DNA of 64,000 nt, from IMG/VR virus record IMGVR_UViG_3300042934_000594, positions 205,431 to 269,430 of that record; one strand, given 5' to 3'. Positions 1,548 to 37,081 of this stretch are shown in pieces. The translations under genes were made by a program, and so were the position numbers. Below the pieces are notes generated by a model. It was not told the DNA's origin. It made no database searches and was given only the letters and a program-made list of their open reading frames with translations. Within the stretch, counting starts at the first letter, position 1. Each line of letters begins with the position of its first letter.

Positions 1548-2342
1548 TTACCAGTTACGCAAGAAGGCCGGGGCTTTCTGTACGTCACGTGCTGGGTGTT
1601 TGCTCCAACCCAGTGCGTTGATCAGGTCATTGGCATCCAGACCCCCGTGTTCCAGCCCGAGCGAACGCATGCGCTTTTGCTCATCAGCCAGTGACCACAG
1701 CATGGTCGGAGTGATCTCGATCGCCCGATCCGTGAAATCTTCCAACGACGGCGAGTTGTACTTGTTCGCCCCCAAGATCCCACCTTCACCCACGTAGTCC
1801 CAAGTCACGATTTCACGGGTGTACTTGATGCCACGGGTGATGTCATCCATGGTCACCGAGCGCACCGAGAAGTACGTGTTCTCGTGTGGGTTTTCGAACG
1901 AGTCTTTGACCACGTGGCCGTAAGGACCACACGGACGGATCTCAGCCATCACGTAGACACACGGACGGCCCTTTTCATCGCGCTGGTTTTCCAACAGGTA
2001 GACCCGGCGGATGTGCGCACAGCGACGGTCGTCGTCGATCTTGCGAATCCGTGCCAGGTACTGCTGGTCGTTCATGGGCTTGCCATCAGGCATGAACGGT
2101 TCAGGGTGCTTGTACTCAGCGTAGACCACGCCTTTAAGCATCCGGCGTACCAACACGCTGTTTTCCTTGAACATGCTCAGACCTGACGCCAAGTCGTAGT
2201 GCATACCCATGGAGTTGTCGGTGCCGTAGGCCCCGACGATCTGCGTGTAGTAGCCATCTTTGTCCGGTGTCAGGATACCCTGCTTACCGGTGCCTTTGAG
2301 CATCGAACAACTGATGCTCGTGCGGTTGGTTTGTGGGAGCAT
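1548..2342 (-). CDS. prohead (head maturation) serine protease, phiKZ gp175 / T4 gp21-like
   Basis: Motifs AEYKHP, FSVRS, TWDYVGEGG; RBS GAGGTGGAG before ATG2342; synteny. Confidence 0.85.
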   Translation of the reverse strand: MLPQTNRTSISCSMLKGTGKQGILTPDKDGYYTQIVGAYGTDNSMGMHYDLASGLSMFKENSVLVRRMLKGVVYAEYKHPEPFMPDGKPMNDQQYLARIRKIDDDRRCAHIRRVYLLENQRDEKGRPCVYVMAEIRPCGPYGHVVKDSFENPHENTYFSVRSVTMDDITRGIKYTREIVTWDYVGEGGILGANKYNSPSLEDFTDRAIEITPTMLWSLADEQKRMRSLGLEHGGLDANDLINALGWSKHPARDVQKAPAFLRNW

Positions 2343-2352
2343 GCTCCACCTC

Positions 2353-3072
2353 TTAAGTCCGTAGAAGTTCTTCGATCCGCTCCACCCGCTCACTGGGGTT
2401 CACAAGGGCGGAGGTAATGCTGTCGCTGAAGTACGAACCGATCAACTTACTGGTGGTGTCAGAGGTGTTCCAAATCACACTTCGGAAAGGCACCACGGCC
2501 GGGGGCCGTTCATCGACGTCACTGTAATCTTGCAGCACGTGCTTGTATAACTGCGTGAAGTCGTCAGCGTTACGACCCATCGTGGAAATGATCAACTCCG
2601 GCACGGCTCGGTTGCCCAAGTTAATGCCGGCGTACTCTTCAGCGGTTTCAAACAACTTAAGCATGTCGAAGTAGTTAAACGACCACGGCATGTTACCCTT
2701 GGCGACGTGCTCATCGTAGATGTAGTACGTCAAGGTGTCATTCTTAACCAGATCGATCCCGTAGAACACCCGGTCACCCGGGAAGAAGCTGAACTCGATG
2801 TAGGCCGTATTGCGGATGGTGACACGTTCGGTAGAGCTTGGGGTGATGCGGATCATCGCCGCCGTTTCAGACACGGTGTAGAACTGGTCATTGACGATCA
2901 AGGAGAAGAACGCGAGGATGTACACCTCGGTGCCAATGCTCGCCAAGTGACGGGTGGTGTAGCGTTCAGGGATCTGAATGCGTACGTGAGCATCTGTGAC
3001 GATGCTCCCGTCGTCCTGCTCAAACAGGTGTTTGTGTACGGCGGCCGGATCACGCTTGAGCTGACCGGCCAT
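2353..3072 (-). CDS. conserved jumbo-phage protein (gp176 position)
   Basis: 239-aa ORF with GGAGG RBS, in the operon between RNAP and protease. Confidence 0.7.
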   Translation of the reverse strand: MAGQLKRDPAAVHKHLFEQDDGSIVTDAHVRIQIPERYTTRHLASIGTEVYILAFFSLIVNDQFYTVSETAAMIRITPSSTERVTIRNTAYIEFSFFPGDRVFYGIDLVKNDTLTYYIYDEHVAKGNMPWSFNYFDMLKLFETAEEYAGINLGNRAVPELIISTMGRNADDFTQLYKHVLQDYSDVDERPPAVVPFRSVIWNTSDTTSKLIGSYFSDSITSALVNPSERVERIEELLRT

Positions 3073-3084
3073 CGTTACCTCCGC

Positions 3085-4875
3085 TTACTTACCGATGCGC
3101 GACCGCAGGATTTTCATCTTGATGTCATCGCCCTTGTCTTCTTCGCTGGGCACTTCAACCGGTTCAGCCGCTTGCGCCACTTCCCCGTCCGCAGGTGCAC
3201 CCAGACCGCTTTCAACGTTGTCCAGTGCTTGCACAGCGTCAGCGTTTTCCACGGTCACTTCCGTTTGCTCGCTGCCGGCTTCTGCTTCACCCGTCTCGGC
3301 TGCCTGAGCGGCGGCCAAGGCGGCGGTGTCTTCCAGCTCTTGCGTCTCATTGGAGATGACGCCTTCGCCTTCCACCGGAACCGACTGCGATTGACCGTTG
3401 TCGACCGCATTGCCCAGTGCTGGGTTGATGAACGGTACGAACGGCACGGCCTGGATTTGTGCAGCCAACCAATCGCCCCCAATGGCCACCAGCGCCACAG
3501 CGGCCAGCGCCCGGTTGTCGTCGCCCCCGTGGATCTTGCTGGCCTTGTCCATTTCCATCAAGAACTCTTGATAGATCGGGTTAGGGAAGTACGCCTCACA
3601 TACCAGCTTGGTGACCACGGCGTAGATGTTGTCGAACATCGCATCCGGACACTGTTGCAGGCTGTTACGCAGACTTTGCATCAGCTCGTTGATCTGAATC
3701 TGTGGCAGGATACTCGCCACGTCCTTATTAGGGGACGACATGACGTTGAGCAGTGTCTTGCGACGATTGCGCACAGCGTCATCGGCTTGGGCCTGGCAGA
3801 TCAGCGGGTAGACCTGCAACCACTTCTTGAGGAACACATCGGCGTGTTGCGCGAAGTCTTCCACACGGGTCACGGACGGATTGAGGATCGCCCCGCCCAG
3901 CAGCACTTGCACATCGTTGCCTTGCTCGATCCAGGCACCGTACAGATCGCCGTTAGCAACGACCTCTACCGTACGACGACCAATGGGGTCGTTACCGTCA
4001 GACCGCAGCACCAGCACGTTGCGTTGCAGCTGAGCCACACGGCGGCCGTAGGCACCGAGCAGGGCAGCACCGAACAGCTCGTGCAGGTGCATCATGGCGT
4101 TGGCCCATTCTTCCAACTCCACCGATTCACCGGTGACGTCCGCTGGGTTCTGCGCCATGTGACCGACCAAGCAGTAGGCCAACAGCAACTCGTCCACCGA
4201 GAACGGCAGACGGTGGCGTTGCAGCATGCTCAGCGACAGGGCGTCCAATGCACGCACACTGAACAACTGTTGCCAGACCGAGGCGATGGTCTCAGCACCG
4301 ACTTTCAGTAGCCACTCGGTGACCTGAGGCGGGTCCAGGTGTGGGTTGTTGTTGGCCACCATCTCGATGACCTGCTCAGCCGAAGCCTGCGGCAGGATGA
4401 ACGAGCGGTAGGACGGGCGCTGTTGCACGGTGGTGTAACGGCTTTGCAGGTGGTTCACCAGACGCGGTTCGTCATGCACCGGGTCGTAGTTGAACACGCT
4501 GATTTCGATCTTCGGCTTGACCACATCACGCTGACGTTCATCGAACGCTGCGCAGTAGGCCAACACCGCAGGACGAATGACGTTGCGCGAGTTGTGCAGG
4601 ATCGCATTCAACCCGTTGGCCATCAGACCGGAAAGACGGTCCACGACATCGCCGTCTTCAGGCGTTGGTTCAGCGTTGGCTTCTTCGAAGTCTTCCTGGG
4701 CCACCTGCATGACTTGCTCAGTCAGAGGGCGTTGATCGCCCTCCACTGGGTTGGCGTACAGGCCCGCCATGGTGGCGAGTGGGAAGGACGGTTCTTTAAC
4801 CGCCAGCACCATGCCAGACTCAGTCAGGGTTTGAGCCAGAGGAGCCACAGCGGCCAGGGTAGTTTGTTGGTACAT
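3085..4875 (-). CDS. conserved jumbo-phage (likely virion) protein with acidic C-terminal tail (gp177 position)
   Basis: AAGGAG before ATG4875; E/A-rich C-terminus; synteny. Confidence 0.7.
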   Translation of the reverse strand: MYQQTTLAAVAPLAQTLTESGMVLAVKEPSFPLATMAGLYANPVEGDQRPLTEQVMQVAQEDFEEANAEPTPEDGDVVDRLSGLMANGLNAILHNSRNVIRPAVLAYCAAFDERQRDVVKPKIEISVFNYDPVHDEPRLVNHLQSRYTTVQQRPSYRSFILPQASAEQVIEMVANNNPHLDPPQVTEWLLKVGAETIASVWQQLFSVRALDALSLSMLQRHRLPFSVDELLLAYCLVGHMAQNPADVTGESVELEEWANAMMHLHELFGAALLGAYGRRVAQLQRNVLVLRSDGNDPIGRRTVEVVANGDLYGAWIEQGNDVQVLLGGAILNPSVTRVEDFAQHADVFLKKWLQVYPLICQAQADDAVRNRRKTLLNVMSSPNKDVASILPQIQINELMQSLRNSLQQCPDAMFDNIYAVVTKLVCEAYFPNPIYQEFLMEMDKASKIHGGDDNRALAAVALVAIGGDWLAAQIQAVPFVPFINPALGNAVDNGQSQSVPVEGEGVISNETQELEDTAALAAAQAAETGEAEAGSEQTEVTVENADAVQALDNVESGLGAPADGEVAQAAEPVEVPSEEDKGDDIKMKILRSRIGK

Positions 4876-4885
4876 GAGTGGCTCC

Positions 4886-5089
4886 TTAGACGCCGAGTTT
4901 CTTGGCCACACGCGCCAGCAGCGCAGTCTGGATGTCTTGTGTGGTCAACAGCTGACCACCGACTTCGTTCGAAGCCCCGTCACCACCCAGGCATTGCTGG
5001 ATGGCAGCGGCGCCCAGTTCCGCTGCGGCGGTCAGGACCTGAAGGGTCTGCGCGTGAGCGGCGTTAGGGCTAAGACTTTGCTTTTGCAT
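4886..5089 (-). CDS. small hypothetical protein
   Basis: GAGGA RBS before ATG5089; fills the gap between RNAP beta and the next gene. Confidence 0.55.
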   Translation of the reverse strand: MQKQSLSPNAAHAQTLQVLTAAAELGAAAIQQCLGGDGASNEVGGQLLTTQDIQTALLARVAKKLGV

Positions 5090-8000
5090 TTGCGGTTCCT
5101 CGGTAAACAGCTGGGACATGTTGAGACAGGAGCCACAACAGGATGTTGGTGGTGCCTGACAATTTAGGTGCGTTGACCATTCGAGCCTCGACCGACGTGT
5201 TGCCGAACTTGGCGTCTAGCGCAATACCCGACTCAGTGGCGTTGGTTCCCGAGAACACCCGGGAGATCACCGTCTTCATCTGGTTGCCCATTACGGCTTT
5301 GTCGCCGACGCCCATGGCGACGTCGTGGTCAATGTAGATGCGAATGGCCACGGTGTCTGGATCCAAGGCCTTACCGCTGACGCGGAAGCTGGTGTCCACT
5401 TCACCGGTGAATGCCGGTTTGCCTTGAGCACGGGAGCTGGTCTTGCGTTCCTTGTCCGATTGCGCTGCAATCGCTTGCAGGTTTTCAGACATGTCCTCAA
5501 AATCGCCGTGGTAGAACACTTCGATCTTGGCCACATCCCCAACGACTTTTGCCCGTGGGGTGGACTGGGACAGGCGGCGCAAGGTGTCCAATGCCGCGCC
5601 CCCAAAGAGCACGTTATTGGCCGTCTCAGGGTCTTCAATCGTACATAGAATTGTTTCCAAGTCTACGTGATCGCCAACCTGCACCAAGCCATGCACCGTT
5701 TGGTCAAACCGAACCTGGATGGTTTTGACTTCGGTGGTCTGGGTATTGAGCTTCTTCGCCATGCTTTCAGAGATGGCCGAACCGTCTTCAAATGTTTCGA
5801 TATCGTCGATCATGGCCACAAAGCCCATGACCCCAGCCTTGACGATCACCTTCCCTGGACTCATGCGATCGGGGGTGAAGAACTTGCGGTTGTAGGCCAG
5901 TGTGTCCCCATGACGAATACGGTCACCGGCTTTAAGGTCGGTGATGACATCGTGTGGGTACGTGGTCCCTGCTGCATTCCCGTGAACCTTACCCAAGGCC
6001 ACCCGCGTTTCAGACCCGTCGGCATAGCGCACGGTGACCGCGTGCTTGTTGACCGAGATCACCTCACCGTCTTGCTCTGCGCACGTCGCAAAGGTGGCGG
6101 TGGTGCGTTGGGCGATAATCTGCTCATACCCGGTGCGCAGTGGGGTGGCGGTATAGCCGTCTGCTGAGACGCCCTGAGCCTGCTGGATCGCAATGAAGTT
6201 GATACGCTTCATGTCGTCGTGGTCAGCACACGGGGCGTTCAAGGCCGAGGCGGAGAACAGTTTGGCAGCACCGTCACGCTCTTTGTCAAACGGACGGGTG
6301 AAACCGCGCATGTTCTTCAAGTTCGCATCAGGCGCTGCGTAGGCAATCACCCCCACGTCACCCGAGTCCACGGTGGATTCAGACACCACCCCCTTATCGG
6401 ATTCGTGGAAGATACGCGTGCGCTCCACCATCGACTGCCCACCCCGACCGCCATCACCCCGGAACGTCATGCGTTCCTGTTCACGCAGGTTCTGGAACGG
6501 GTTGGACTCCTCGGTCATACCGGCCGATGGATCCTGCACGATCTTCATCCACACCGCGTGCGGGTTGAGCTCAACGGCATGGTCCCCGGATGCCGAACGG
6601 TTGTTAAAGCTTTTCACCGAACGGGAGAGTTCACCGTAGACCATCCCCGCAAAACGCTCGTAACCCCGGTAGCGCATGAACGCACCGTCCACTTCCTCAG
6701 GACTGTAGTCGGTCATCAACAACTCAACCGCACGCAACACCAGAGGACCGAACTCGGTCGGCTCACCCATCTCTTCGAGCATGCCGCGGGTGATCGGGTC
6801 CATCCACGCTTTAAACAGCGCGTCGATCTCACGCAAATAACGCACGCCTAGGTCGTTGTCTTCCAAGATACGGAAGTAGACGTCCTTGCGGTCAAAGTCC
6901 CACACCGAGTACTGCTTCAAGGTGCGGTGATAACGGTTCAAGCCGTTGAGCACCAGCGTGGCCCGGTAGTCCAACTTGGAGAACACCAACACCTCATCCT
7001 GGAAGGTCAGTGCATAGTCATCGGCCCCCATCTGGATGCGCTCGCCACGGCGATGGCGCGAGACTTCACAACCCAGTCGACGGATCAACTCCGTCAGGCC
7101 TGAGGCGTAACCCAAGACCAGACCGACTGGCAACACCTTGTTGGCCACGGTCATCTCAGCCGCTTCCACCGGTGCCCCGTTGGTGTCAATCCCCAAGATA
7201 TCGGGCAACGTGCCCAATACTTCCAACCCTTCGTCGGTGTGCAGGTACAGCGCGTTGTTGGTGTCCATCAGCACCAGTTGCTTACCGTTGTGCGCGATCG
7301 CTACTTGGGTGGGTGTTTCGATGGTGTGCACGTCCAACTTCAGGGCCGTGTCAAAGAACTCCGCCCGGCGCTTGTGGTCCAGGAAGAACACGTACTCACC
7401 GGCTTGGAAGGACACGAAGCGCTTGGCCAGCAACGTATAGAAGCGGGGCAATTGCAACGACATGTCAAACACACTGGAGAACCGCACGTCACTGATCGTG
7501 GCGTCCTGAGGGTCCAGACCCCGACGGGTGATGTTCTTGCTGATGAAGTTGTCAAAGTCGTTAACCGCACGACCCGAACGGTCCACGAAGGTTTTGTTGT
7601 AGTAAGAGGTCAAGGCGACTCGCGTCGGGTTGATCTTACGGATGGGTTGGTCAGCGCGCTGAAGGCCGTACTTGTAGGTCACCCCGTTAGAGACAAAGCG
7701 TCCATCGTCATCGAGCACCGGTAGGCGAAAGCGCAGGGTCGATTGACGCCCGCGCAATGGCTTGACCGTTACCGTGTGGATCTGGTAATGGTTCATCGCA
7801 TCGCGAACGGTTTCGATCTGATAGTCCTTGACGGCTACCCCTTGCTGCTGGATCGCTGCCAAGGTGACGTTGAGCACGTCCTTGGCCATCAGTTTACGGA
7901 TGTACTTGGTCTGGATGGCCTTAAGGTTCGACGAGAGCATGGACTTGTCGAAGATCGTGTCGGCATCGGGGAACTTGACTTCTTCAGGCAGCGTCAGGTC

Positions 8001-9464
8001 ACCGTCCTGGTACGTCATGGCCTCTTCAAGCGTGCCCCCCGTCCCGTACGGGTTGGGCAGGGTCTTGTACGTCTCAGCGTCGTCAATGGCACGCTGATAA
8101 GCTCGAGGGGTGATCAATTGCAGTTCCGAGAGTTCCCAGGCCTTTTCGATCACACCGCCTGTGAGCAGGTCGCTGGTCGTGGGCTTTTGCATGTCCACTT
8201 CTTCATCGAGCCCCGCCTGACTCAGCTCCTCGGTGGGCAGCACGCGGTGTTCTTCCTCCTCATCGTCTTCAACGAGTGAGGTGTCCATGACAAACTCGTC
8301 CTGGGTAGTCGGTGGTGCCATGGTGTCGCCAAAGTCAACCCCCAGACCAAAGTCCAGTTCGTCGTCCTCGGTGAGCTCCTCGTCCTTGGCCGAGTCTTCC
8401 TTCTCGTCCTCCGCCGGTTCGGCTGCCACCGGTGGGGCCACAGGCTTCTTGTCGTCCTTGCCCAGTGCCTTTTCAATCTGACCGGCATTGGGCTTGAGTT
8501 CAATGGCGCCTTCGGCGTCAGCGGTTTTACCGTCCAGTTGAACAGAACCGTTGATCAGGTCAGCCAGACTGTGCAGGAGGACCACAAAGCGACGTTGCAG
8601 CTGATCCCCAGCGACGCCCTGGGCTCGGTCGCTAATCGCCTGCTTGTGGGCTCGTAGCTCCTTAGGGGTCATCTTGCTGGTGTCGGTGGTGTCTTCAGTC
8701 AGGTCTTTACGCCAATCGTTGATCTGGCCCAGGTTCCAGACGAAGAAATAGCTGCGTGCTTTGAACACGAAGTTGATCTTGTCCAGCGCCTCTTCGGGCA
8801 CAGTGGCCAACAACGAGTCAGCCCGGTTGTTACCCAACCACTGATACAGGTCAAACGCACTGAGCATGGCCGGGGTGCTGAACACCTCCATGTTCTTTTG
8901 CGTGGCGCCTGCCTGCATCTGCACGAACTGCCCCAGGGTCGGCAGGCGTTCTGGCATGTGGAAGTTGATGTACTGGTTCCAGCCGAACCGCTCGTGGGTT
9001 TTAACCACGTTGTCCCAGAAGGTCTTTTGATTATTGAACCAACGGAAGTACGTCGCCTTGTACGACGGGATGTACCGGTACAGCGAGTTGAGCAGGTTGT
9101 AGTTGACCACCAGCGTGTTCTGCTGGTTGAGCACCAGGGCGTCGTCTTTACGCAGGGGCTTGAACAACCGGTTCTTACGACGGAACTCGTTCTCCAGGAT
9201 ATCGGGGTTGAGGACCGTGCGCTTTGGGGCGCCTTCCGTGGAGTCCAGGCGGCTGACGTGCTCGATGAACACCTTACCCTTGATTGCCGTCAGGTACGGG
9301 TCCTGTGGACTTGGACCCAGGATGGCCTGACCGTCTTCGAAGAACTGGTACACCGAACCCATCGGCAAATACAAGTGCTTGATCGGAATCATGCGCGGGG
9401 CCAGTAACTGACTGACCTGGCGCACACCGACCAACCTGTAGTAGGGGGCTTGTTTTAAACGCAT
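5070..9464 (-). CDS. virion multisubunit RNA polymerase beta-like subunit (phiKZ gp178-like)
   Basis: beta motifs FVSNGV, VSESTVDSGDVG, DDMKRINF, FEDGSAIS, GDKAVMGNQMKTVI; 1464 aa. Confidence 0.92.
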   Translation of the reverse strand: MRLKQAPYYRLVGVRQVSQLLAPRMIPIKHLYLPMGSVYQFFEDGQAILGPSPQDPYLTAIKGKVFIEHVSRLDSTEGAPKRTVLNPDILENEFRRKNRLFKPLRKDDALVLNQQNTLVVNYNLLNSLYRYIPSYKATYFRWFNNQKTFWDNVVKTHERFGWNQYINFHMPERLPTLGQFVQMQAGATQKNMEVFSTPAMLSAFDLYQWLGNNRADSLLATVPEEALDKINFVFKARSYFFVWNLGQINDWRKDLTEDTTDTSKMTPKELRAHKQAISDRAQGVAGDQLQRRFVVLLHSLADLINGSVQLDGKTADAEGAIELKPNAGQIEKALGKDDKKPVAPPVAAEPAEDEKEDSAKDEELTEDDELDFGLGVDFGDTMAPPTTQDEFVMDTSLVEDDEEEEHRVLPTEELSQAGLDEEVDMQKPTTSDLLTGGVIEKAWELSELQLITPRAYQRAIDDAETYKTLPNPYGTGGTLEEAMTYQDGDLTLPEEVKFPDADTIFDKSMLSSNLKAIQTKYIRKLMAKDVLNVTLAAIQQQGVAVKDYQIETVRDAMNHYQIHTVTVKPLRGRQSTLRFRLPVLDDDGRFVSNGVTYKYGLQRADQPIRKINPTRVALTSYYNKTFVDRSGRAVNDFDNFISKNITRRGLDPQDATISDVRFSSVFDMSLQLPRFYTLLAKRFVSFQAGEYVFFLDHKRRAEFFDTALKLDVHTIETPTQVAIAHNGKQLVLMDTNNALYLHTDEGLEVLGTLPDILGIDTNGAPVEAAEMTVANKVLPVGLVLGYASGLTELIRRLGCEVSRHRRGERIQMGADDYALTFQDEVLVFSKLDYRATLVLNGLNRYHRTLKQYSVWDFDRKDVYFRILEDNDLGVRYLREIDALFKAWMDPITRGMLEEMGEPTEFGPLVLRAVELLMTDYSPEEVDGAFMRYRGYERFAGMVYGELSRSVKSFNNRSASGDHAVELNPHAVWMKIVQDPSAGMTEESNPFQNLREQERMTFRGDGGRGGQSMVERTRIFHESDKGVVSESTVDSGDVGVIAYAAPDANLKNMRGFTRPFDKERDGAAKLFSASALNAPCADHDDMKRINFIAIQQAQGVSADGYTATPLRTGYEQIIAQRTTATFATCAEQDGEVISVNKHAVTVRYADGSETRVALGKVHGNAAGTTYPHDVITDLKAGDRIRHGDTLAYNRKFFTPDRMSPGKVIVKAGVMGFVAMIDDIETFEDGSAISESMAKKLNTQTTEVKTIQVRFDQTVHGLVQVGDHVDLETILCTIEDPETANNVLFGGAALDTLRRLSQSTPRAKVVGDVAKIEVFYHGDFEDMSENLQAIAAQSDKERKTSSRAQGKPAFTGEVDTSFRVSGKALDPDTVAIRIYIDHDVAMGVGDKAVMGNQMKTVISRVFSGTNATESGIALDAKFGNTSVEARMVNAPKLSGTTNILLWLLSQHVPAVYRGTANAKAKS

Positions 9465-9466
9465 GG

Positions 9467-11125: not shown

Positions 11126-11137
11126 CGCGTAGAACGA

Positions 11138-11165
11138 TATGATTGATTAAAGATGCCGGAGCATA
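11138..11165. promoter_or_regulatory. candidate divergent late promoters (TATG on each strand)
   Basis: TATG at 11138-11141 (+) and 11165-11162 (-) in a 43-bp divergent gap; TATG is the known phiKZ late consensus. Confidence 0.4.
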
Positions 11166-11168
11166 GCC

Positions 11169-27630: not shown

Positions 27631-27649
27631 AACCTTACCAGGAGCGGGT

Positions 27650-27940: not shown

Positions 27941-28025
27941 AGTACGGCGTCAGAGCCCTCGATGGAGGGCTCTGTCTATGCCCTCTTGCGGTTAAGGGAT
28001 ACCCTGTTTTATGCCGTCTGGGTCC

Positions 28026-28053
28026 ATTGCAAAGAGTTTAAAACCTATATGAC
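28026..28053 (+). promoter_or_regulatory. early promoter candidate
   Basis: ATTGCAAA-gag-TTTAAAACCTATATGAC. Confidence 0.65.
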
Positions 28054-28107
28054 TCAGGTGTAGAAGTTCTACAATTTGTATCCCATACCAGGTCCTAAGG
28101 AGGACAT

Positions 28108-29092: not shown

Positions 29093-29125
29093 TCCATCCA
29101 CCCCCGTACCGTTAAGGAAAATGTC

Positions 29126-30544
29126 ATGGCCCGTAAGACTCCAGCCGTAGAACCAGTTGAAACTGTGACAACTGGTGCCAGCAAATTGCGTAAGTACCAG
29201 ACCGAATACGAGGAAGCTCAGCGTAACGGCTTTACCGAAGACTACGCCAAGTTCGCCAGTCGCCACACCAGTAAGCTGCGGGCACAAGCCAAAGACCAAC
29301 GCCTGGTCGATGACTTCAATGCGCGCAATCAGCAGCGCGCTCAGCCAGCGAAGAAGGCTCAGCCTAAACCGTTGACGCATTCGGCGCTGAACGCCAAGAT
29401 CATTGACGACCTGAACTTGCTCAAGAGCAATCCTGACCAGGTCTGGACCTATATCCTCAACACGTTCTCAGACGTGGTGGGGTCGGTGAACGGCATGACC
29501 ATCAAGGACATCGTCGACTCACTGCCGGCGGTTGAAGACCCTGCGCTGATGCAACAGCCAACCGATGCACCGATCAAACAGGACTTCACGCCTGAGGAGC
29601 TGGCGAAGTTGGTTGGTGTTTCAGGTTCTGGTCAATTGACCCCAGAACAACTCAAAGAAGCCGTACACCTGGCGTTCCAGGAAATCGCGGCTCGGCGTCG
29701 GGATCGGGTGCGCACCCGCAAGGAAGAGGCGGCAGCACAAGAAAACCTTAACCGCGAGAAGGCTGAGGAGGAGCGCTTTCAAGCGCGCCACAAACGTCAT
29801 CCGCTGGTCGAAGGGTTGGAGGTGGCCTTCCTTCAGAACTACACCCCAAGCCTTCAGGACCCGACTTACGGTTTTGTTCTGCGTACCTTCAAACGCAATG
29901 CTCAGCAATACCCACTGTACTACCGCCTGTACGACACACGCAACATGACACGGGGGTACAGGAGTCGGCACGAGGAAGAATTGATTGGACGGGGCGCTGA
30001 AGCACGGGGTCGTAACCCGCTGTACAACGCCGGTTTACCGACTGGGCGTGACGAGAGCTTTATCGCTCAGCAGGTGCAAGCGTTGGCGCAGTCACTCTTC
30101 GGTGACGACGATTGGGTGTTCCGTGGGATCCAGGTCCACGAGACATTCGAAATGCCAGACGTCCATACCCGGCAACTCTTCCCACTGCATGACTTTGGTC
30201 GGTTCACTGGCCAAATCATCATCGACAAGTACACCCGCCTTAACGTCGGTGCCTCAGCCGAGTCCAGCGGTTACTACCCCGTAGGTGGTTTCAGCATCGT
30301 CCTGCCATTCGACGGCAAGATGCGGCACTACCGCATTCAGGCAACACTGGAGTCGGTGCTCCCCGCTGACGTCCCGCTGGGTGAAGGTGACGCACGTTAC
30401 GTGGCTAAGCGCCTTGCTGAACTGTTGGCGGCAACCGATTCCAGTCTGATCGGTGTGGCCCACGTTCTCTACCAAGCTTCACCCACCGGCAACGAAGAAC
30501 GCGGGATGGTCACTCCCGCCATTGACATCGACATTACCGTCTAA
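29126..30544 (+). CDS. hypothetical protein (472 aa, coiled N-terminal half)
   Basis: Long ORF with AAGGA RBS. Confidence 0.8.
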   Translation: MARKTPAVEPVETVTTGASKLRKYQTEYEEAQRNGFTEDYAKFASRHTSKLRAQAKDQRLVDDFNARNQQRAQPAKKAQPKPLTHSALNAKIIDDLNLLKSNPDQVWTYILNTFSDVVGSVNGMTIKDIVDSLPAVEDPALMQQPTDAPIKQDFTPEELAKLVGVSGSGQLTPEQLKEAVHLAFQEIAARRRDRVRTRKEEAAAQENLNREKAEEERFQARHKRHPLVEGLEVAFLQNYTPSLQDPTYGFVLRTFKRNAQQYPLYYRLYDTRNMTRGYRSRHEEELIGRGAEARGRNPLYNAGLPTGRDESFIAQQVQALAQSLFGDDDWVFRGIQVHETFEMPDVHTRQLFPLHDFGRFTGQIIIDKYTRLNVGASAESSGYYPVGGFSIVLPFDGKMRHYRIQATLESVLPADVPLGEGDARYVAKRLAELLAATDSSLIGVAHVLYQASPTGNEERGMVTPAIDIDITV

Positions 30545-30613
30545 CCCCAACCGGGGGTAAGCAGCGGATGCTTGCCCCCTTCCTATCTATATAGGTCAAA
30601 CAGGAAGAACACC

Positions 30614-31075
30614 ATGGCCGTACATAACCACTCCCTGGACCCAGGATCGCATCCACCTCGGATCGACCCGAAACATCAGGTGTTGCTTCACCGTGTGAAG
30701 ACGTATGAAGACATGCGCGCCGGTTTTGCAGCAGCGATGCAGCAGTTTGCAACTAACACTGCGCCCGTGACACTGTGTATGAACGACCCCATTCAAGCGC
30801 TGATGATTTTCGCTTTAAGTGGCGATAAGACGCGCTACGCGTTCAAACACTGGGCTGTACATCTGCACAAAGTGACGAAAGGTAAAGTTTCGTTCGTGGG
30901 AGCGCGGGAGTTACTCGCCCAATCGATCGGCTACGACTGTTACCTCTCCGCTAAGCAGAGTGAGGTGGACTACACCTACAGCAACGCCCGTGGACCGAGC
31001 TGCCTGAATGAGCGGTTCTTCCTGAGCGAGGCTGCGCGAAACTGGTTCGCTCGTACTGATGTAAAGATCCATTAA
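30614..31075 (+). CDS. hypothetical protein
   Basis: AGGA before ATG30614. Confidence 0.65.
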   Translation: MAVHNHSLDPGSHPPRIDPKHQVLLHRVKTYEDMRAGFAAAMQQFATNTAPVTLCMNDPIQALMIFALSGDKTRYAFKHWAVHLHKVTKGKVSFVGARELLAQSIGYDCYLSAKQSEVDYTYSNARGPSCLNERFFLSEAARNWFARTDVKIH

Positions 31076-31132
31076 AATGTCATAGGGGGCACTGTTGCCC
31101 TTTATGCCGTCACCTCACATTCTGGAATCACC

Positions 31133-31495
31133 ATGACTCACACCGAAGAGAAGTCACCCCGTTGGGCACGCATCCCTCTGCGCAACCTGCGACTGGGCGA
31201 CACGTTCACCGATCGACAAGCCGGTCAGGAGTTCACCGTGGTCAGCGAACGTTGCACCACGCCAGACATCGTGGTCGAGAACGGTAAGCTGCGTGCTGGG
31301 GACCGCCTGATCTGCGACGTCTTGATTCTGTCGTATGACCTGGACAACCATCAGAGCCGTGCAGAGCTCAGCCTGCTGACCCGTGAGCTGACGGTTTTCA
31401 ACCACGACGGCAGTTCCACCCAACAACCTTATCCAGAAACGGCTCTGACGCGTTTTGCGAGCACCGAGTGGCTTAAGCTCTGGGATGTTACTTGA
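31133..31495 (+). CDS. hypothetical protein
   Basis: ORF followed by a hairpin at 31513-31534 and a T tract. Confidence 0.65.
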   Translation: MTHTEEKSPRWARIPLRNLRLGDTFTDRQAGQEFTVVSERCTTPDIVVENGKLRAGDRLICDVLILSYDLDNHQSRAELSLLTRELTVFNHDGSSTQQPYPETALTRFASTEWLKLWDVT

Positions 31496-31603
31496 TTGAA
31501 CGAAGTCGGCGTAGAGGGGCTTATAGGCCCCTCTGTGACCGCCTTTTTCTTTTTGTTCGAATAGTATGTACGCTACACCTTTTCTAAGTTTGAGGAACTC
31601 TGT

Positions 31604-32038
31604 ATGAGCAACTTGTGGATCGATTGCGAATTTAACTCAGGGGGTGGTGACCTGATCTCGTTGGCACTGGTCAATGAGGACGGCAGTCGGGAGTTTTACG
31701 AGGTCGTTGAATGCAAACAACCCATCGATCCATGGGTCGCTGAACACGTGATGCCTTTCCTGGAGAAGGAGGCGTTGAGTCACGATGAGTTCCAGGCGCG
31801 GTTGCAAAAGTTCCTCAAACAGTTTCCTGGCATTAGCGTCTATGCCAACCATCCGGCTGACTTTAAGTACTTCATGCAGGCCGTCGAGTTCACCCAGGGT
31901 AAGTGGATGATGATCCAGCCCTTGACGATGATCCTGGATGATGACATCTCCGGTAAAGGCTCCAAGGTCCCCCACAATGCTTTGCACGACGCCCGCGCCA
32001 GTCGTGATAGCTGGATGAAGAATAACGGCTACTTATAG
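31604..32038 (+). CDS. DEDDh 3'-5' exo(ribo)nuclease (RNase AS-like)
   Basis: IDCEF, LISLALV, DPWVAEHVMP, HNALHDA. Confidence 0.8.
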   Translation: MSNLWIDCEFNSGGGDLISLALVNEDGSREFYEVVECKQPIDPWVAEHVMPFLEKEALSHDEFQARLQKFLKQFPGISVYANHPADFKYFMQAVEFTQGKWMMIQPLTMILDDDISGKGSKVPHNALHDARASRDSWMKNNGYL

Positions 32039-32057
32039 CCATCCAGGATTTACCATC

Positions 32058-32762
32058 ATGCACCATCCCCGAAAAGAACATGCCTTAGAGGTGATTCTCC
32101 GACGCCCTCTACGAAAGAGTCGCGCGGAAACCATTTTGCGGATGCTCATGGCATCCAGCTACCCGCACGCTACCCTGGCAAACCTAACCCTTGAACTGAG
32201 CCGCATGGGCGGTGTCGAGAAGGGTGAGCTGGAGCGTGTGTCTGAAGAGCTGCGCGACATGGAGCGCAGTTTTGACATGATGGACTTTATCCGCTGTGTG
32301 GAAATCAAGCGCAACCAAGAACGGGTCACCGTGGTGGTCAAGCGTCTGAAGATCACGCCGTCGATGCAGACCATCAAAGACACGCAGTTGCACCATGAGC
32401 CGTTAACGTCTTCAAACATTGATGTCGGGGAAGGCTTGGTGTTGGCCGATACCGAAGCGATGGCGAAGACGCTGTTGGATGCGTTTCACCGGACTCAGGT
32501 CAAGCAGCCCGCCGTGGGCCGTGCGATCGAACAGTCGCTGTGGGTGCAGCGCCGCAAAGACCCAGATTCCAGCGCAGTGTCACCCGAAGGGGCCTGTAAC
32601 AAGTTTATTGACCTGAAGATTGATTTCTCCCAGGCCGGTACCTTGATTAAAGCGTCTTTGGACAAGGACAAGTTTCACCTGATCCTGACCCAAGATACGA
32701 TTCTCCTGTTGGATCAAGAGACGCGTCTGTGGTTGGTCGAAGCCGAAGCACCTGCGCCGTAA
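32058..32762 (+). CDS. hypothetical protein
   Basis: 234-aa ORF with AGGA RBS. Confidence 0.7.
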   Translation: MHHPRKEHALEVILRRPLRKSRAETILRMLMASSYPHATLANLTLELSRMGGVEKGELERVSEELRDMERSFDMMDFIRCVEIKRNQERVTVVVKRLKITPSMQTIKDTQLHHEPLTSSNIDVGEGLVLADTEAMAKTLLDAFHRTQVKQPAVGRAIEQSLWVQRRKDPDSSAVSPEGACNKFIDLKIDFSQAGTLIKASLDKDKFHLILTQDTILLLDQETRLWLVEAEAPAP

Positions 32763-32764
32763 CG

Positions 32765-32797
32765 GCATAGACGCCTCCCACTGGGGAGGCGCTTATG
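32765..32797. terminator. bidirectional hairpin between convergent genes
   Basis: CGCCTCCC-ACTG-GGGAGGCG flanked by GCATA and TTATG. Confidence 0.8.
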
Positions 32798-32802
32798 TTG
32801 TC

Positions 32803-34578
32803 TCAGTGCTTCACCAGGTTACCGGCTTGGCCAACGTGGTAAAACCCCTTGCCGTTGGTGCTGCTGATCCAACGCCCGTACTCCAAGAAGTTCAGGAAAT
32901 TGGCCCCCTCCATTCGCACCGCCGTGTTGCCGGAGGGGTAGTACCAGACCTGATCCGGTAACACCAAGGCTGCACGCTTGCGGTCTGGGTTACTGGCAGC
33001 ATTAAGCTCTGCCACCGAATCGTACACCGGCAAACTCACCAGGCTCAACACCCCCATCACTGACTGCACGATGGGCCCGTCCTTGTGCACCGCCACTGGC
33101 AATTGCTGAGGGTGGTTAGCATTGTCACTGAAGTAAGCCTGGGCGTAAGCCTGCACTTTGGCGTACGCTTGTTGCCAGGTCAGGCTTGCGTATTCGTCAC
33201 GGGCAAACTGACGGATCACGTAAGCATGGTTCAGCACACCCTTGACCTTGTTGGCGTTGTCCACCGTGAACTTGATGCCGTAGTTGTACGGCGTAGTAAA
33301 CCGGTGTTCAATGACGTCTCCGTGGCGCAATTCAAAGCCGCGCACGCTGCCGGTCAACCAAGTGTACGTGGTTTGCACCCCGTTAAATTGGAAGTTACCC
33401 AGCAAGATCCCATTGCGGTACACCCCACCCATAAAGGTCGGGGGTTGAGCGATGGTGGTTTTAAGGGACCCATCCCACGCCCGTTTGAACGTGGTGTGTT
33501 TGTCCCCCAGCTGCTGCCCCGTCGCATTGAGGTGGAACAGAAACTCCCCCTTAATGATGGTGTACTTGTACTTCCCTGTCACCAGCGTACCGTCTTTCAT
33601 GACCACCAGGAAGTTGATCTGGTTCTCCCCCTCGGTGGCCAAAGGGATCGCCGGGATGTTACCTGGGGTGTAGGTCGGGTATTCAGTGACCACCACTTTG
33701 GATTCAGACGGGCCGGCGTAGATGTCCTCACTGTCCAACATGCCGTTGTACAGAGGATGGTCCCCGTACGTACGGCGCAGGAAACCTACGTTGACCGGCG
33801 AGCGGTCAAAGTTACCCGTGAAGAACGAACCGAAATTCACCATGACCCGGTTAGCGGTGGCGTAGAAGCCGGCACCGGCTGGGGTGGTGACCTGTTTGAT
33901 GTCGGTCTGCACATTTGTGCCGTGGTCCGTGATGAAGATCAGGCCGTTACCCTGTTCCCGGTACGTCACCAAATCTGTGATCGCCGCTGGAGTGATCAAC
34001 TCAGGGTTGTTGGGGGCGTAGGCGGTGGAGTACATCACCACACAGCAGTAAGCATCCAATTCACTGAACGTACAGCCCAGGACGCCGCCTGGGTAATCGG
34101 TCAGGTCCTTGTACACGCCGGTGAAACCCATCAGCGCTAACAGCCCCTGCATAGAGGTGTTAAACCCATCAGCCCCGGTAGACTTCACCGCGTAGCTTGC
34201 GGTGATCGGGTTGTCTCCCAGAAACAGCACTTTCTTATTGCCAGCCGCGACCTTGGCTGCGTTGGCACAAAAGTGAATGGCGTTCCACAGGTACTTGTAA
34301 CCCCCGGGGAGCTGGCTGAAGCTGGTGAAGTTCGTCCACGTGGAGTTATAGAACTTAGGGAAGCCGCCGTCGTACACCACATTACCCTTACCGTCCTGGG
34401 TCACGGCGATGAAAGGGTTGGGGGGTGTTAAGGTGTCGTAGGCGATGTACTCCGACAGTGCCGGAGGAATGTCATTGACACTGTAGGCCACCCGTTCGAC
34501 CTGGGGGTCGAACGTCCAGGTGGTGTCCGCGCGATCAGGGTAGAACTGTGGCGCAAGACCCGGGTTGATGATGGACAT
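32803..34578 (-). CDS. virion structural / tail-fibre-associated protein
   Basis: GNVVYDGGFPKFYN motif recalled from phage virion proteins; beta-rich; minus-strand operon. Confidence 0.55.
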   Translation of the reverse strand: MSIINPGLAPQFYPDRADTTWTFDPQVERVAYSVNDIPPALSEYIAYDTLTPPNPFIAVTQDGKGNVVYDGGFPKFYNSTWTNFTSFSQLPGGYKYLWNAIHFCANAAKVAAGNKKVLFLGDNPITASYAVKSTGADGFNTSMQGLLALMGFTGVYKDLTDYPGGVLGCTFSELDAYCCVVMYSTAYAPNNPELITPAAITDLVTYREQGNGLIFITDHGTNVQTDIKQVTTPAGAGFYATANRVMVNFGSFFTGNFDRSPVNVGFLRRTYGDHPLYNGMLDSEDIYAGPSESKVVVTEYPTYTPGNIPAIPLATEGENQINFLVVMKDGTLVTGKYKYTIIKGEFLFHLNATGQQLGDKHTTFKRAWDGSLKTTIAQPPTFMGGVYRNGILLGNFQFNGVQTTYTWLTGSVRGFELRHGDVIEHRFTTPYNYGIKFTVDNANKVKGVLNHAYVIRQFARDEYASLTWQQAYAKVQAYAQAYFSDNANHPQQLPVAVHKDGPIVQSVMGVLSLVSLPVYDSVAELNAASNPDRKRAALVLPDQVWYYPSGNTAVRMEGANFLNFLEYGRWISSTNGKGFYHVGQAGNLVKH

Positions 34579-34586
34579 GGTTCACC

Positions 34587-34940
34587 TTACGCGGCTTTGA
34601 GTTTGGTCGGTGCGTCACAGCGCACAAACACGGTCAGCGGAGCGCTGTGATAATTCTGCACGATAACGGACCCGTCATCCTTCAACCCCACCGTGATCAA
34701 CATCTCAGAGTTGATAAAGTACCCATTGGTGGGAGACGTCGTATCAGTGTCCAGCACCGTGGCCACGATGCGTGCAGACAAGGGATCGAACTTGGCCAAG
34801 TCTACCCCCAGGGTGGCCAGGTTGTACGTCTTGGTGGCGCCTGAGGGCAGCGTGATCTTTTCGCTGATCACCGGCTTGACGCGGGCTTTGATGGCAGAGA
34901 AATAGTTGGCCACCGCTGTAAGTAAACGAGATTGCGACAT
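34587..34940 (-). CDS. small virion/tail-associated protein
   Basis: Beta-rich 117 aa, same operon. Confidence 0.55.
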   Translation of the reverse strand: MSQSRLLTAVANYFSAIKARVKPVISEKITLPSGATKTYNLATLGVDLAKFDPLSARIVATVLDTDTTSPTNGYFINSEMLITVGLKDDGSVIVQNYHSAPLTVFVRCDAPTKLKAA

Positions 34941-34960
34941 GTGGAGTACTCTTAAAGGGA

Positions 34961-37081
34961 TTACCAGTTACTCAGGTATGCCGGTACGGACACACGAGGT
35001 GCACACACCACCTGAGGCATGAAGTCTTCTTGACTGATCATGATGTCAGTGCCGTCAAACAGCGCCTGAACGTGTCGGTGCATCAGACGGTTCTCATCCA
35101 GCTCCTGCTCGTCATCGAACGCTTCCACCGCCACCCCTTCAGCAAAGGGTGACTTGATCCCCATGATGGCTTCCACCATTTCCTGCGACCAGGCCAGGAT
35201 GTCCGCTGAACGGGTCGAGATGTTCGGCCGGTCACCGGTGTCCAAGCGTACCTTCCACACCACGGTCTGGGTAGTCGCCCCGATCCGGTGGATACGGGAA
35301 ATGGCCTGCTCATTGATGTATGCCCGGAAGGGATCGTTGAGCATGATCATGTTGTCCGCCATCACCAGCGGTACCGCGGTGGACAGTGAGTTGAAGGTGG
35401 CAAGCAGCGGGTTGATGTGCACGTCCGATTCAAACCGAGCCACGGTGTTGGCCAACTCGTTGTTGGTCTTACCGTAGACCGTCAGTGGATTGAGTCCCAC
35501 TGTGGAACAGTGCCGGTCCATCGCTTCCAGCGCTTCTACAAAGCTGGTGAACACCACCGTCTTCTTGGTGGTCGAGTCGCAGACCCCCACAAAGTCAACA
35601 TGAGGTACCATCGCTACGTGGCATTCAATCCGAGCCCGCCCCAGGACACGCCCTAAGCACTCGCCCTGGATCTTAAGCGACACGTACTTGATGATGGTCT
35701 TGGTCTCCTTAAACCGTTCCACCATCTCCCGGGGGAGTGTGGGTTGGAAGACCTTCTTCTCGTACACGTTGCAAAAGCGGATCTCTTCCCCGATGTACCG
35801 AGGGTCCGCAGTACGGACCACGATGTTCAGCACCCGCAAGTATTCACTGAACCCTTTACGGGCTGCTGTGCTTTTGAGGCTGGCTTCGTGAACACTCAAA
35901 CACTGTTTCCAGAAAGCTTCGTCCTCCTTACGGCATCCCTCGTAGTAACGGGACCGCTCCAGGATGAACTTTTGCATCAATCCCTTGATGGACTCCAAGG
36001 TGAAGGCGTCCCCATTGGGGATGGTCACCGGCAGGATCTTCATGATCGGATCAGCCAGCTTGAGCTCGGACTTCTCGACCTTGTAGGAGATCAACCCCAT
36101 GCGGTGCTTGAGAATGTCCAAGCCTTTATTCGCACTGGAGCCGTAGATCTTCTTGAAGCGCATCTCAGCATCAGCATTAAAGCGGGGATCAATGCTGCGT
36201 AGCATCGGGATGCATTCCGAACCCAAGGCTTTGATCGGTGTGCCCGAGGCCCACAGGGTGTCCTGCGAGTCCACCATCCGGTCAACCTCCAGGAAGTTCT
36301 GGGTGCGCTGACTGGTCAGTTCATTGAGGAAATGGGATTCGTCGAGAATCACCATCACCGACTTGCCTTCCTTGCGCAGCATCTCCGCAATGTGCTGGAT
36401 CTTGCCGAGGGATTCAAAGTGCACGATCAAGTACTTCTCACCGCGGTACTCGTGTCCTTGGGCCTCGATCCAGTAGGTCGGGGTTTCCTTGAACAGCTTG
36501 AGCATGCCGTCCTTTTCCCAGACCCGCTCGGTGGCGTTCAAGGGACAGGCCACCAGCACGTGATCCACGTCCAGGCACTCTGCCACCGCACAGCAGGTAA
36601 AGGTCTTACCCGAACCTGCCGCAGCAGCCAGTAGATAACCGCGCAGCCCGTAGGCGGTCACCAGGGTGCTGTAGGTCTCCAGGAAGCGCTGTTGGAACGG
36701 CAGCGGTGTGTACTTAAGCCGTGACAGGTTCTTAAGGTTCAGCCGCTCTGGAGCGTCTGCATCGGGCTTGGTGTTCTTAAGCCAGGTGTGCTCTTCCAGC
36801 GCATCACGCAGGTTGGTCAATACCCGCGTGGAAGTGAACCGTGATCGCTTGGTGGACACCAGGGTGTCCAGGATGTAGACGATCTCTGGGGCAAAGAAGG
36901 GGTTGAAGCTGAAACTGTTCTTACCGAAGTCTGAGAACATCCACTCATTGACTTTGGATGTCTTCCAAATGCGCAGGATGTCGCGCTGCATGATGTCACC
37001 GGGAATACCGCTGACTTCGATCAGGCGGTCAGTCGCGGTAACCTTGATTGTTCCTATTAGCCGCCGAAAGCCACCTAACAT
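34961..37081 (-). CDS. SNF2/SF2 helicase (virion-associated in phiKZ-like phages)
   Basis: AAGSGKT, ILDESH, ASGTP, QAISRIHRIG; GAGGTG before ATG37081. Confidence 0.9.
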   Translation of the reverse strand: MLGGFRRLIGTIKVTATDRLIEVSGIPGDIMQRDILRIWKTSKVNEWMFSDFGKNSFSFNPFFAPEIVYILDTLVSTKRSRFTSTRVLTNLRDALEEHTWLKNTKPDADAPERLNLKNLSRLKYTPLPFQQRFLETYSTLVTAYGLRGYLLAAAAGSGKTFTCCAVAECLDVDHVLVACPLNATERVWEKDGMLKLFKETPTYWIEAQGHEYRGEKYLIVHFESLGKIQHIAEMLRKEGKSVMVILDESHFLNELTSQRTQNFLEVDRMVDSQDTLWASGTPIKALGSECIPMLRSIDPRFNADAEMRFKKIYGSSANKGLDILKHRMGLISYKVEKSELKLADPIMKILPVTIPNGDAFTLESIKGLMQKFILERSRYYEGCRKEDEAFWKQCLSVHEASLKSTAARKGFSEYLRVLNIVVRTADPRYIGEEIRFCNVYEKKVFQPTLPREMVERFKETKTIIKYVSLKIQGECLGRVLGRARIECHVAMVPHVDFVGVCDSTTKKTVVFTSFVEALEAMDRHCSTVGLNPLTVYGKTNNELANTVARFESDVHINPLLATFNSLSTAVPLVMADNMIMLNDPFRAYINEQAISRIHRIGATTQTVVWKVRLDTGDRPNISTRSADILAWSQEMVEAIMGIKSPFAEGVAVEAFDDEQELDENRLMHRHVQALFDGTDIMISQEDFMPQVVCAPRVSVPAYLSNW

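Follow-up and report, generated by a model that had tools for sequence, protein, structure and literature searches.

Why should two unrelated enzymes of a phiKZ-like giant phage, encoded some 33 kb apart, end in the same short peptide? The window analysed here is a stretch of 64,000 nucleotides (positions 205,431 to 269,430 of the 269,430-bp virus record IMGVR_UViG_3300042934_000594). Its prohead (head-maturation) protease ends PAFLRNW and its SNF2 helicase ends PAYLSNW, in both cases behind [SAG]-x-E sites of the kind cut by such proteases. The original prediction, made from sequence alone, was that this is a cleavable C-terminal head-targeting peptide shared by low-copy internal head proteins and potentially usable for capsid cargo loading. 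We examined whether the likeness exceeds chance, whether it is kept in orthologues and which function best accounts for it.

Results

Two ORFs with a common C-terminal tail

Both ORFs and both tails were found exactly as predicted (Table 1). The protease matches Pfam Peptidase_S80 (PF20034, E 2e-86, 289 bits against a cut-off of 23.4) and phrog_3014, 'head maturation protease' (E 2e-79), and is 51% identical to phiKZ gp175. Its H79, S159 and D182 are invariant in an alignment of 31 proteases; by similar position, although not by an alignment made here, they match H77, S153 and D178 of the SPN3US protease (PMC5694885). The protein ends NSPSLE↓DF...SLGLE↓HGG...QKAPAFLRNW, where arrows mark candidate cleavage sites. 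The helicase scores above the cut-offs for ResIII and Helicase_C, just below that for SNF2-rel, and matches phrog_62 (E 2e-107). The Walker A motif GxGKT and the DExH motif are invariant in the helicase alignment. Its single best match in phiKZ is gp203 (E 3e-205, 45% identity), which is annotated as a structural protein, and tblastn with phiKZ gp201 and gp202 placed their homologues directly downstream, which fixes the protein as the gp203 orthologue, a member of the gp203-type virion SNF2 helicases of the Chimalliviridae. It ends GVAVE↓AFDDE...MISQE↓DFMPQVVCAPRVSVPAYLSNW. The neighbourhood of the protease likewise has the same gene order as in phiKZ.

Table 1. Coordinates of the features in the window, with residue numbers of the encoded proteins.
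Position	Strand	Feature	Details
1548..2342	-	Prohead protease, Peptidase_S80 family, orthologue of phiKZ gp175	264 aa from the likely start, an ATG at 2342; ORF 1548..2393, the open frame reaching a GTG at 2393
1551..1739	-	C-terminal extension of the protease	Residues 202-264; in order: flexible linker, helix, G-L-E site, helix ending in LGW, basic linker, terminal tag
1740..1748	-	S-L-E201, candidate autocleavage site of the protease	P-[SA]-L-E↓, at the end of the protease domain
1650..1658	-	G-L-E231, second candidate cleavage site of the protease	Inside the extension; context G-[LM]-E-[SHN]
1551..1571	-	Terminal tag of the protease	P-A-F-L-R-N-W, followed by stop TAA at 1548-1550
34961..37081	-	SNF2/SF2 helicase, orthologue of the virion helicase phiKZ gp203	706 aa from the likely start, an ATG at 37081; ORF 34961..37093, the open frame reaching a TTG at 37093
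35123..35131	-	A-V-E653, candidate cleavage site of the helicase	
35027..35035	-	S-Q-E685↓D-F, candidate cleavage site of the helicase	21 residues before the C-terminus
34964..34984	-	Terminal tag of the helicase	P-A-Y-L-S-N-W, followed by stop TAA at 34961-34963
32803..34940	-	Two genes downstream of the helicase, homologues of phiKZ virion proteins gp201 and gp202 (synteny markers)	gp201 homologue 32803-34578; gp202 homologue 34587-34940
465..4911	.	Neighbourhood of the protease, head proteins	gp174-like 465-1505 (+); gp176-like 2353-3072 (-); gp177-like 3085-4911 (-)

A search of all ORF ends had been put forward at the outset as a way to probe the motif. Among 2478 stop-to-stop ORFs of at least 50 aa in the whole genome, only these two end in [FYW][LMIV]..W. 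Only the corresponding two ORFs end with the tag in phiKZ and in G010, one of the genomes compared; in 201phi2-1 and Psa21 one extra doubtful ORF each also matches. However, within a single genome the likeness is not statistically unusual: 14 pairs among 804 ORFs of at least 100 aa share five of their last seven residues, against 5.7 expected from column shuffles. The background for any tail of this kind among ORFs of at least 100 aa in seven genomes is 93 of 3819, including the true cases. The case therefore rests on comparison across genomes. The two tails differ at synonymous sites (Ala GCC/GCA, Leu TTG/CTG), so that the likeness is kept at the protein level and is not a recent gene conversion.

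The tail is conserved and varies in step in the two families

Loss of the motif in orthologues had been named in advance as an outcome that would refute the idea; the opposite was observed. Of the orthologues, 96 of 98 proteases and 111 of 120 helicases end in a variant of the tag (P-x-[FYW]-[LM]-x-W or P-x-[FYW]-[LM]-R) or in W, and this conservation extends over protein divergence down to about 35-45% identity. The motif proline (P258 of the protease, P700 of the helicase) is nearly invariant in both alignments. In 30 of 37 genome-matched pairs both proteins use the same variant: 14 pairs have ...h-x-W in both, 13 have ...[LM]-R in both (terminal Trp lost), two have a two-residue spacer in both (this genome and its nearest relative) and one is degenerate in both (AS-x-SW). 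There is no cross-type pair. In the other seven pairs, all from distant clades, the helicase has no recognisable tag while the protease keeps a W tail. G010 carries the W form in both proteins, although it sits inside or at the base of the R-form clade. OBP and EL end ...D-[ILV]-F in both proteins, and Goslar ends in F-x-x-W in both. Independent co-switches of tail type number only two to three, too few for a formal sign test on independent pairs to reach significance.

A third, unrelated family carries the same tail. The protein encoded at 100036-100770 of another compared genome, G015 (phrog_5043; Noxifer gp128), and 10 homologues end ...[SA]-x-E-[DE]-[FW]...P-x-F-[LM]-x-W or in a degenerate W tail. 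A scan of 20 related genomes for P-x-[FY]-h-x-W-stop gave 22 hits against 11 for the reversed control. Apart from the protease, the helicase and the third family, most extra hits were short spurious frames; two small ORFs (58 aa in genome G005 and 55 aa in genome G039) are doubtful.

Candidate cleavage sites and flexible tails

A [SAG].E site lies 8-50 residues from the end in 100% of proteases (15% expected), 92% of tagged helicases (36% expected) and 8 of 8 third-family members (34% expected). These figures concern the motif; cleavage itself was not assayed for either protein. E201 and E231 are invariant among the 31 aligned proteases. E201 lies at the end of the catalytic domain, where SPN3US gp245 has its mapped autocleavage site AQE-203 (PMC5694885); equivalence of the two sites is inferred from similar numbering and not from an alignment. 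In the helicase, [SA]-x-E↓D-[FY] recurs in orthologues at the distance of S-Q-E685 from the C-terminus. AlphaFold2 models place the sites and tags in low-confidence, extended segments after well-folded cores. In the protease, domain 1-200 has pLDDT above 90, residues 204-207 below 50 and residues 245-264 about 61-64. In the helicase, segment 647-661, which contains A-V-E653, and the tail 689-706 both have pLDDT below 50.

Search for a receptor

No receptor was found. A complex prediction of the phage's own major capsid protein (L175:743-2950) with the last 43 residues of the protease scored 0.00 and gave no answer, which is no evidence either way and leaves undecided whether the tag binds the inner face of the HK97-fold shell protein. 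We then looked in 98 core families from seven genomes for alignment columns that split by tag type. That split (78 columns) was no commoner than control splits (62-75), and the top family, gp32-like, had six conservative changes, so the scan did not settle the matter. In 21 genomes, eight columns of the capsid protein split by tag type, against 32 that group G010 with the R-form clade; only positions 518 (T/K) and 717 (I/FL) are clean, a weak lead only, and gp176-like has no clean column.

Discussion

The observation that protease and helicase share a C-terminal tail behind candidate cut sites is real. The interpretation as a cleavable head-targeting peptide is supported, since every comparative test we could run backs it. 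The background on which it drew, that phiKZ gp175 and its relatives cleave after [SAG]-x-E and remove their own C-terminus, agrees with published work (PMC5694885, PMC9026906). However, 'low-copy internal head proteins' is too broad a description of the carriers: in this genome only the protease and the helicase carry the tag, and the virion RNA polymerase subunits do not.

We suggest that the last 6-7 residues form a short linear tag with the core P-x-[FYW]-[LM]-x(1-2)-W, here P-A-[FY]-L-x-N-W. During head assembly the tag would bind a common site inside the nascent prohead, which could be the major capsid protein precursor, a core or scaffold protein, or the portal region, so that a few copies of the protease and of the gp203-type helicase are enclosed. 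Once active, the protease would cut at the [SAG]-x-E sites in flexible linkers 10-60 residues upstream, releasing the enzymes from the wall; the small tag peptides would be lost and the freed helicase would stay with the packaged DNA. In this view the tag is portable, as in the Noxifer lineage a third, unrelated family carries it. We hold this reading with moderate confidence. The tag with its conservation, exclusivity and matching variants, the cut-site motifs and the flexible tails rest on the present analysis, and the head location and processing of gp203 orthologues and the packaging defect of a truncated SPN3US protease on published experiments; that the tag itself is the binding element, that the helicase enters by it, that the helicase tail is the part removed, and any identity for the receptor are our inferences.

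Published experiments are consistent with this model. phiKZ gp203 is processed and packaged in the head, although whether it is cleaved at the N- or the C-terminus was not ascertained here. PhiPA3 gene 233, the same orthologue, localises to phage bouquets and not to the nucleus (PMC10643120), and RAY gp131 localises with capsids, whereas a second SF2 helicase is nuclear (bioRxiv 10.1101/2023.02.24.529968). Head packaging is known only for these orthologues and was not measured for the present helicase. SPN3US gp245 removes a 64-residue C-terminal propeptide, and a mutant lacking only the last 26 residues (am66) is active in vitro but absent from proheads (PMC7411985). This is indirect evidence, as no experiment links the tag itself to packaging, and whether it is necessary and sufficient was not examined. 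C-terminal GFP fusions of the RAY and PhiPA3 helicases reportedly still reach capsids; if those fusions were indeed C-terminal, which we did not confirm, a free end is not strictly needed. Fossati et al. (2023) built gp203 with a C-terminal 3xFLAG, but gp203 is not among their validated injected proteins, which fits loss or blocking of the tail but proves nothing.

Other functions were considered and seem unlikely. The tag could be a docking (exosite) motif for the protease, recruiting the helicase, the third family and neighbouring protease molecules for cleavage in trans and not addressing proteins to a structural receptor. Its constant coupling to an upstream [SAG]-x-E site and its presence on the protease, which would suit trans-autoprocessing, are compatible with this, and the matching variants fit co-evolution with a pocket on the protease as well as with any other receptor. 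However, the many other substrates of the protease (capsid protein, portal, inner-body proteins) lack the tag, only two ORFs carrying it per genome, and am66 protease still cleaves substrate in vitro yet fails to enter proheads, which points to targeting. Alternatively, the tag might serve a purpose outside assembly, as a C-terminal degron that lets host proteases clear unassembled copies, or as an autoinhibitory or tethering element that keeps both enzymes inactive in the cytoplasm until it is removed. A terminal hydrophobic or aromatic tail on a flexible linker, removable through nearby cut sites, would suit such a role, and both carriers are enzymes that could harm the infected cell if active too early. 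Against this, three unrelated folds would each need their own inhibitory pocket for the same peptide, a host-recognised degron should not shift between variants in step within phage lineages infecting similar hosts, and the loss of packaging in am66 is not explained. Chance or shallow convergence without a shared function is very unlikely. Although five-of-seven matches between unrelated ORFs occur about six times per genome by chance and the independent-pairs test is underpowered, the same two families share the tail in 30 genome-matched pairs without a mismatch, the tail survives considerable protein divergence, and a third family has the same tail and cut site.

A broader possibility, which we put forward tentatively and rate as somewhat less likely than not, is that Chimalliviridae may use an encapsulin-like, cleavable C-terminal 'zip code' for loading enzymes into the capsid, in lineage-specific variants (...h-x-W, ...h-x-x-W, ...[LM]-R, ...D-[ILV]-F) that co-evolve with one receptor in the prohead. 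It would be modular enough to have been acquired by unrelated proteins, namely the helicase, the Noxifer gp128 family and perhaps a homing endonuclease and small ORFs. Appending about 25-60 residues (cut site plus tag) would then deliver any protein into the head and, after cleavage, into the infected cell together with the DNA.

How giant nucleus-forming phages select the dozens of proteins that they package and inject is largely unknown, and no scaffold has been identified for them. A defined 6-7 residue tag gives a direct handle for finding the receptor inside the prohead, may explain why one SF2 helicase goes to capsids while its paralogue goes to the phage nucleus, and offers a simple way to load reporters or enzymes into phiKZ-like capsids for studying early infection.

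The closest precedent within the family is the C-terminal propeptide of the giant-phage prohead proteases SPN3US gp245 and phiKZ gp175, the same region of the same proteins, for which autocleavage of about 64 residues and a proposed role in prohead targeting are published (PMC5694885, PMC7411985, PMC10052503). In the papers we could search, no terminal consensus motif was defined and its presence on the gp203 helicase and on a third family was not noted. [quoted passage not shown] The present tag resembles it in being shared by three unrelated families and in having a prohead-protease cut-site motif between signal and mature protein. However, the T4 CTS is N-terminal and binds the gp22 scaffolding core, whereas the tag lies at the extreme C-terminus, is shared with the protease itself and has no known gp22 counterpart; T4 gp21, gp22 and Alt showed no shared C-terminal motif when we compared them. 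In phage P1, DarB, a virion-packaged SNF2-type helicase protein, is addressed to the capsid by a short terminal signal that also carries a reporter into heads (PMC9024508), and gp203 orthologues are often annotated 'DarB-like'. The DarB signal is the N-terminal 30 residues, needs helper Dar proteins and is not known to be shared with the protease.

The tag also links giant-phage assembly to the wider theme of C-terminal cargo signals in HK97-fold shells. Encapsulin cargo-loading peptides are short conserved C-terminal peptides on flexible linkers that direct unrelated enzymes into an HK97-fold shell, although they are not cleaved off and have another consensus. In HK97 the C-terminal tail of the gp4 protease carries the signal that binds the capsid protein or scaffold domain and gets the enzyme enclosed (Duda, Oh and Hendrix, 2013), and in herpesviruses and lambda the protease and scaffold share that end. 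In those systems the shared end arises from nested, in-frame genes, whereas here unrelated genes 33 kb apart carry a 6-7 residue motif kept by selection.

Genome context and the shared C-terminal tail

The 64 kb examined here are the last part of a single 269,430-bp viral contig (G000) with 56% G+C. Gene content and order follow phiKZ gp174 to gp203 and beyond. The nearest named relatives are Pseudomonas phages Psa21, PS119XW and 201phi2-1, at only about 54% protein identity for the protease, and the closest metagenomic relative reaches 77%. It is therefore a new lineage of phiKZ-like, nucleus-forming giant phages (Chimalliviridae).

The original prediction, that a prohead protease and an unrelated helicase end in the same short peptide behind S-x-E sites, is borne out by the sequence. 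The Peptidase_S80 prohead protease (Pfam E 2e-86) ends ...SLE↓DF...GLE↓HGG...KAPAFLRNW and the SNF2/SF2 helicase ends ...AVE↓AF...SQE↓DF...SVPAYLSNW, where arrows mark candidate cleavage positions. A search of ORF ends throughout the genome, which had been proposed together with the prediction, found that only these two of 2478 ORFs end in [FYW][LMIV]..W. Taken alone this is weak evidence, since tail matches of 5/7 occur in 14 ORF pairs per genome, against about 6 expected by chance. The two tails differ at synonymous positions, so they are not a recent DNA copy of each other. The same comparison of tails showed that four small neighbouring ORFs in the window share a C-terminal tail Y-[FY]-x-x-I-N-[TD], and are probably a local paralogue family of unknown function. 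Outside the window, two adjacent ORFs of the same contig end in the identical heptapeptide PVLELIL, and the related genome G010 has PVLELVP and PVLELEY tails; this is probably a paralogous structural gene pair. Close to the protease, the gp177-like head protein has a long acidic, Ala/Glu-rich low-complexity C-terminal third ending in a short basic tail (...KMKILRSRIGK); phiKZ gp177 is reported as an injected protein (PMC10449902).

Coordinates of the features discussed (G000 is the 269,430-bp contig; L numbers are extracted loci)
Feature	Sequence	Position	Strand	Locus
Peptidase_S80 prohead protease ORF	window	1548..2393	-	
gp177-like head protein	window	3085-4911	-	
SNF2/SF2 helicase ORF	window	34961..37093	-	
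Four small ORFs with tail Y-[FY]-x-x-I-N-[TD], whole region	window	37159-40959	+	
Small ORF 1	window	37159-37758	+	
Small ORF 2	window	37994-38710	+	
Small ORF 3	window	39480-39821	+	
Small ORF 4	window	40543-40959	+	
Two adjacent ORFs ending PVLELIL	G000, outside the window	158073-159926		
Major capsid protein	G000	142642-144849		L175:743-2950
HNH_3 homing endonuclease	G002 (IMG/VR record of 231,290 bp)	221564-221983	-	L140:12567-12962
58-aa ORF with tag-like end	G005 (IMG/VR record of 231,818 bp)	68335-68511	+	L223:1345-1518
Helicase with LAGLIDADG_3 insertion	PhiPA3 NC_028999	216447-219617		
Protease and helicase of OBP and EL	NC_016571 and NC_007623			L214, L215, L218, L219

Conservation of the tail in both protein families

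Absence of the motif from orthologues had been named beforehand as an outcome that would overturn the prediction. Word-index protein searches returned 98 proteases and 120 helicases, of which 96 and 111, respectively, end in a variant of the motif or in W. The background is 2.4% of long ORFs in seven genomes, true cases included. A large representative protein search was not part of the survey, nor were sequencing reads or any other genetic code. The protease extension has a fixed plan, consisting of P-[SA]-L-E (E201 invariant), a helix, G-[LM]-E (E231 invariant), a helix ending LGW, a basic stretch and then P-x-[FYW]-[LM]-x-W. The helicase tail has a flexible acidic linker, a short helix, an [SA]-x-E site and the same terminal motif. 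In phiKZ only gp175 (...RRPGFMR) and gp203 (...QPAYMRF) have such ends. About one in ten gp203 orthologues (P0102, P0104, P0137, P0146, P0147 and P0212 of our search, and the PhiPA3 protein) is roughly 1040 aa long and carries a LAGLIDADG_3 (PF14528) insertion, i.e. an intein-like element inside the helicase; the copy in the window (706 aa) has none.

Matching tail variants within genomes

We paired protease and helicase from the same genome for 29 IMG/VR records and 8 contigs matched by length. The tail type is the same in both proteins in all 30 pairs where the helicase has a tail: 14 pairs have ...h-x-W, 13 have ...[LM]-R (terminal Trp lost), two have a two-residue spacer (this genome and its nearest relative) and one has a degenerate AS-x-SW. 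Seven distant genomes have a helicase without the tail, and SPN3US-like genomes lack the helicase altogether. On a tree of the protease domain, the pair with the two-residue spacer is one clade (100/100) and the R form lies in one clade (100/99). Genome G010 uses the W form in both proteins and sits within or at the base of that R-form clade. The number of independent co-switches is only 2-3, so a sign test cannot be significant; the argument is instead that the same specific change appears in both proteins each time.

The distant relatives OBP and EL end ...D-[ILV]-F in both proteins. Their proteases (...SFTDIF, ...SSLDVFR) and helicases (...TISDLF, ...SVLSLF) have a different but mutually similar tail, possibly another variant of the same signal. 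Goslar ends PAFLEW in the helicase and SFNHW in the protease.

Further proteins with a tag-like end

Scanning five whole genomes showed another tagged protein in one of them, G015. It is 245 aa long, belongs to phrog_5043 of unknown function and has no Pfam hit. Its 11 database homologues, which include Pseudomonas phage Noxifer gp128, end ...[SA]-x-E-[DE]-[FW]...P-x-F-[LM]-x-W, or in a degenerate W tail in the most distant ones. The protein is absent from this genome, phiKZ, G002 and G010. An HNH_3 homing endonuclease in G002 ends SKEDFDEPIWLGW, i.e. a cut-site-like S-K-E↓D-F plus a tag-like P-x-W-L-x-W tail; this could be chance, or a mobile nuclease that rides in capsids. A 58-aa ORF in G005 ends ...TAKE↓WVEAD...EDRPPYLDW, i.e. 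a cut-site-like A-K-E followed by a tag, but it has no Pfam match and may or may not be a real gene. Other pattern hits were mostly spurious short frames.

Candidate cleavage sites and predicted structure

A [SAG].E site lies 8-50 residues before the end in all tagged proteases (15% expected from same-size windows of the protein body), in 92% of helicases (36% expected) and in 8 of 8 members of the third family (34% expected). The sequences are related and these are therefore not independent counts. However, the site moves along the linker between clades while staying present. AlphaFold2 models give a confident protease domain (residues 1-200), a break at 204-207 right after E201, and a low-confidence extended end. 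For the helicase, they give a confident core to about residue 640, whereas segments 647-661 (with A-V-E653) and 689-706 (the tag) have pLDDT below 50. The mature C-terminus predicted for the helicase is ...SQE or ...AVE in this genome and ...SFE in phiKZ gp203.

Discussion

Published work on related phages is consistent with a role of the tail in head assembly. phiKZ gp175 is the S80 type protease and, as the original prediction stated, it cuts after S/A/G-x-E and loses its C-terminus (PMC5694885, PMC9026906). SPN3US gp245 loses 64 C-terminal residues, and the amber mutant am66, which lacks only the last 26, gives an enzyme that is active in vitro but absent from proheads; the authors propose that the propeptide targets the protease into the prohead (PMC7411985, PMC10052503). 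phiKZ gp203 is a non-essential helicase that is processed, packaged into the head and co-pellets with DNA (bioRxiv 10.1101/2025.11.23.690004). None of the papers searched mentions a terminal motif shared by protease and helicase, although key older papers were not covered and prior notice is not excluded. PhiPA3 gene 233, the orthologue of gp203, localises to phage bouquets (PMC10643120), and RAY gp131 localises with capsids, while another SF2 helicase is nuclear (bioRxiv 10.1101/2023.02.24.529968).

The proposed interpretation of the tail as a cleavable head-targeting peptide is supported, in that a cleavable C-terminal prohead-targeting tag is the most economical reading of these data. In this view the tag would bind one receptor in the assembling head and so enclose the protease, the helicase and, in some lineages, further proteins, after which the protease would remove it at the upstream sites. 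The tails, their distribution and matching variants, and the upstream site motifs were observed directly in the sequences, whereas binding, enclosure and removal by way of the tag belong to the interpretation. Our analyses did not identify the receptor. Across 21 genomes, residue 518 of the major capsid protein is T in all 10 W-form genomes (including G010) and K in all 11 R-form genomes, and residue 717 is I against F/L; this is a weak lead for a receptor site and may be plain phylogeny. A docking motif for the protease itself, or a degron or autoinhibitory tail, remain possible alternatives but fit the SPN3US result and the restricted distribution less well.

Signals of this general kind have been described in other systems. 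The T4 CTS and the P1 DarB signal are N-terminal. C-terminal precedents are the HK97 protease tail, the herpesvirus scaffold/protease tail and encapsulin cargo peptides. What is new is a defined consensus, its sharing by unrelated proteins, and its lineage-specific variants in Chimalliviridae.
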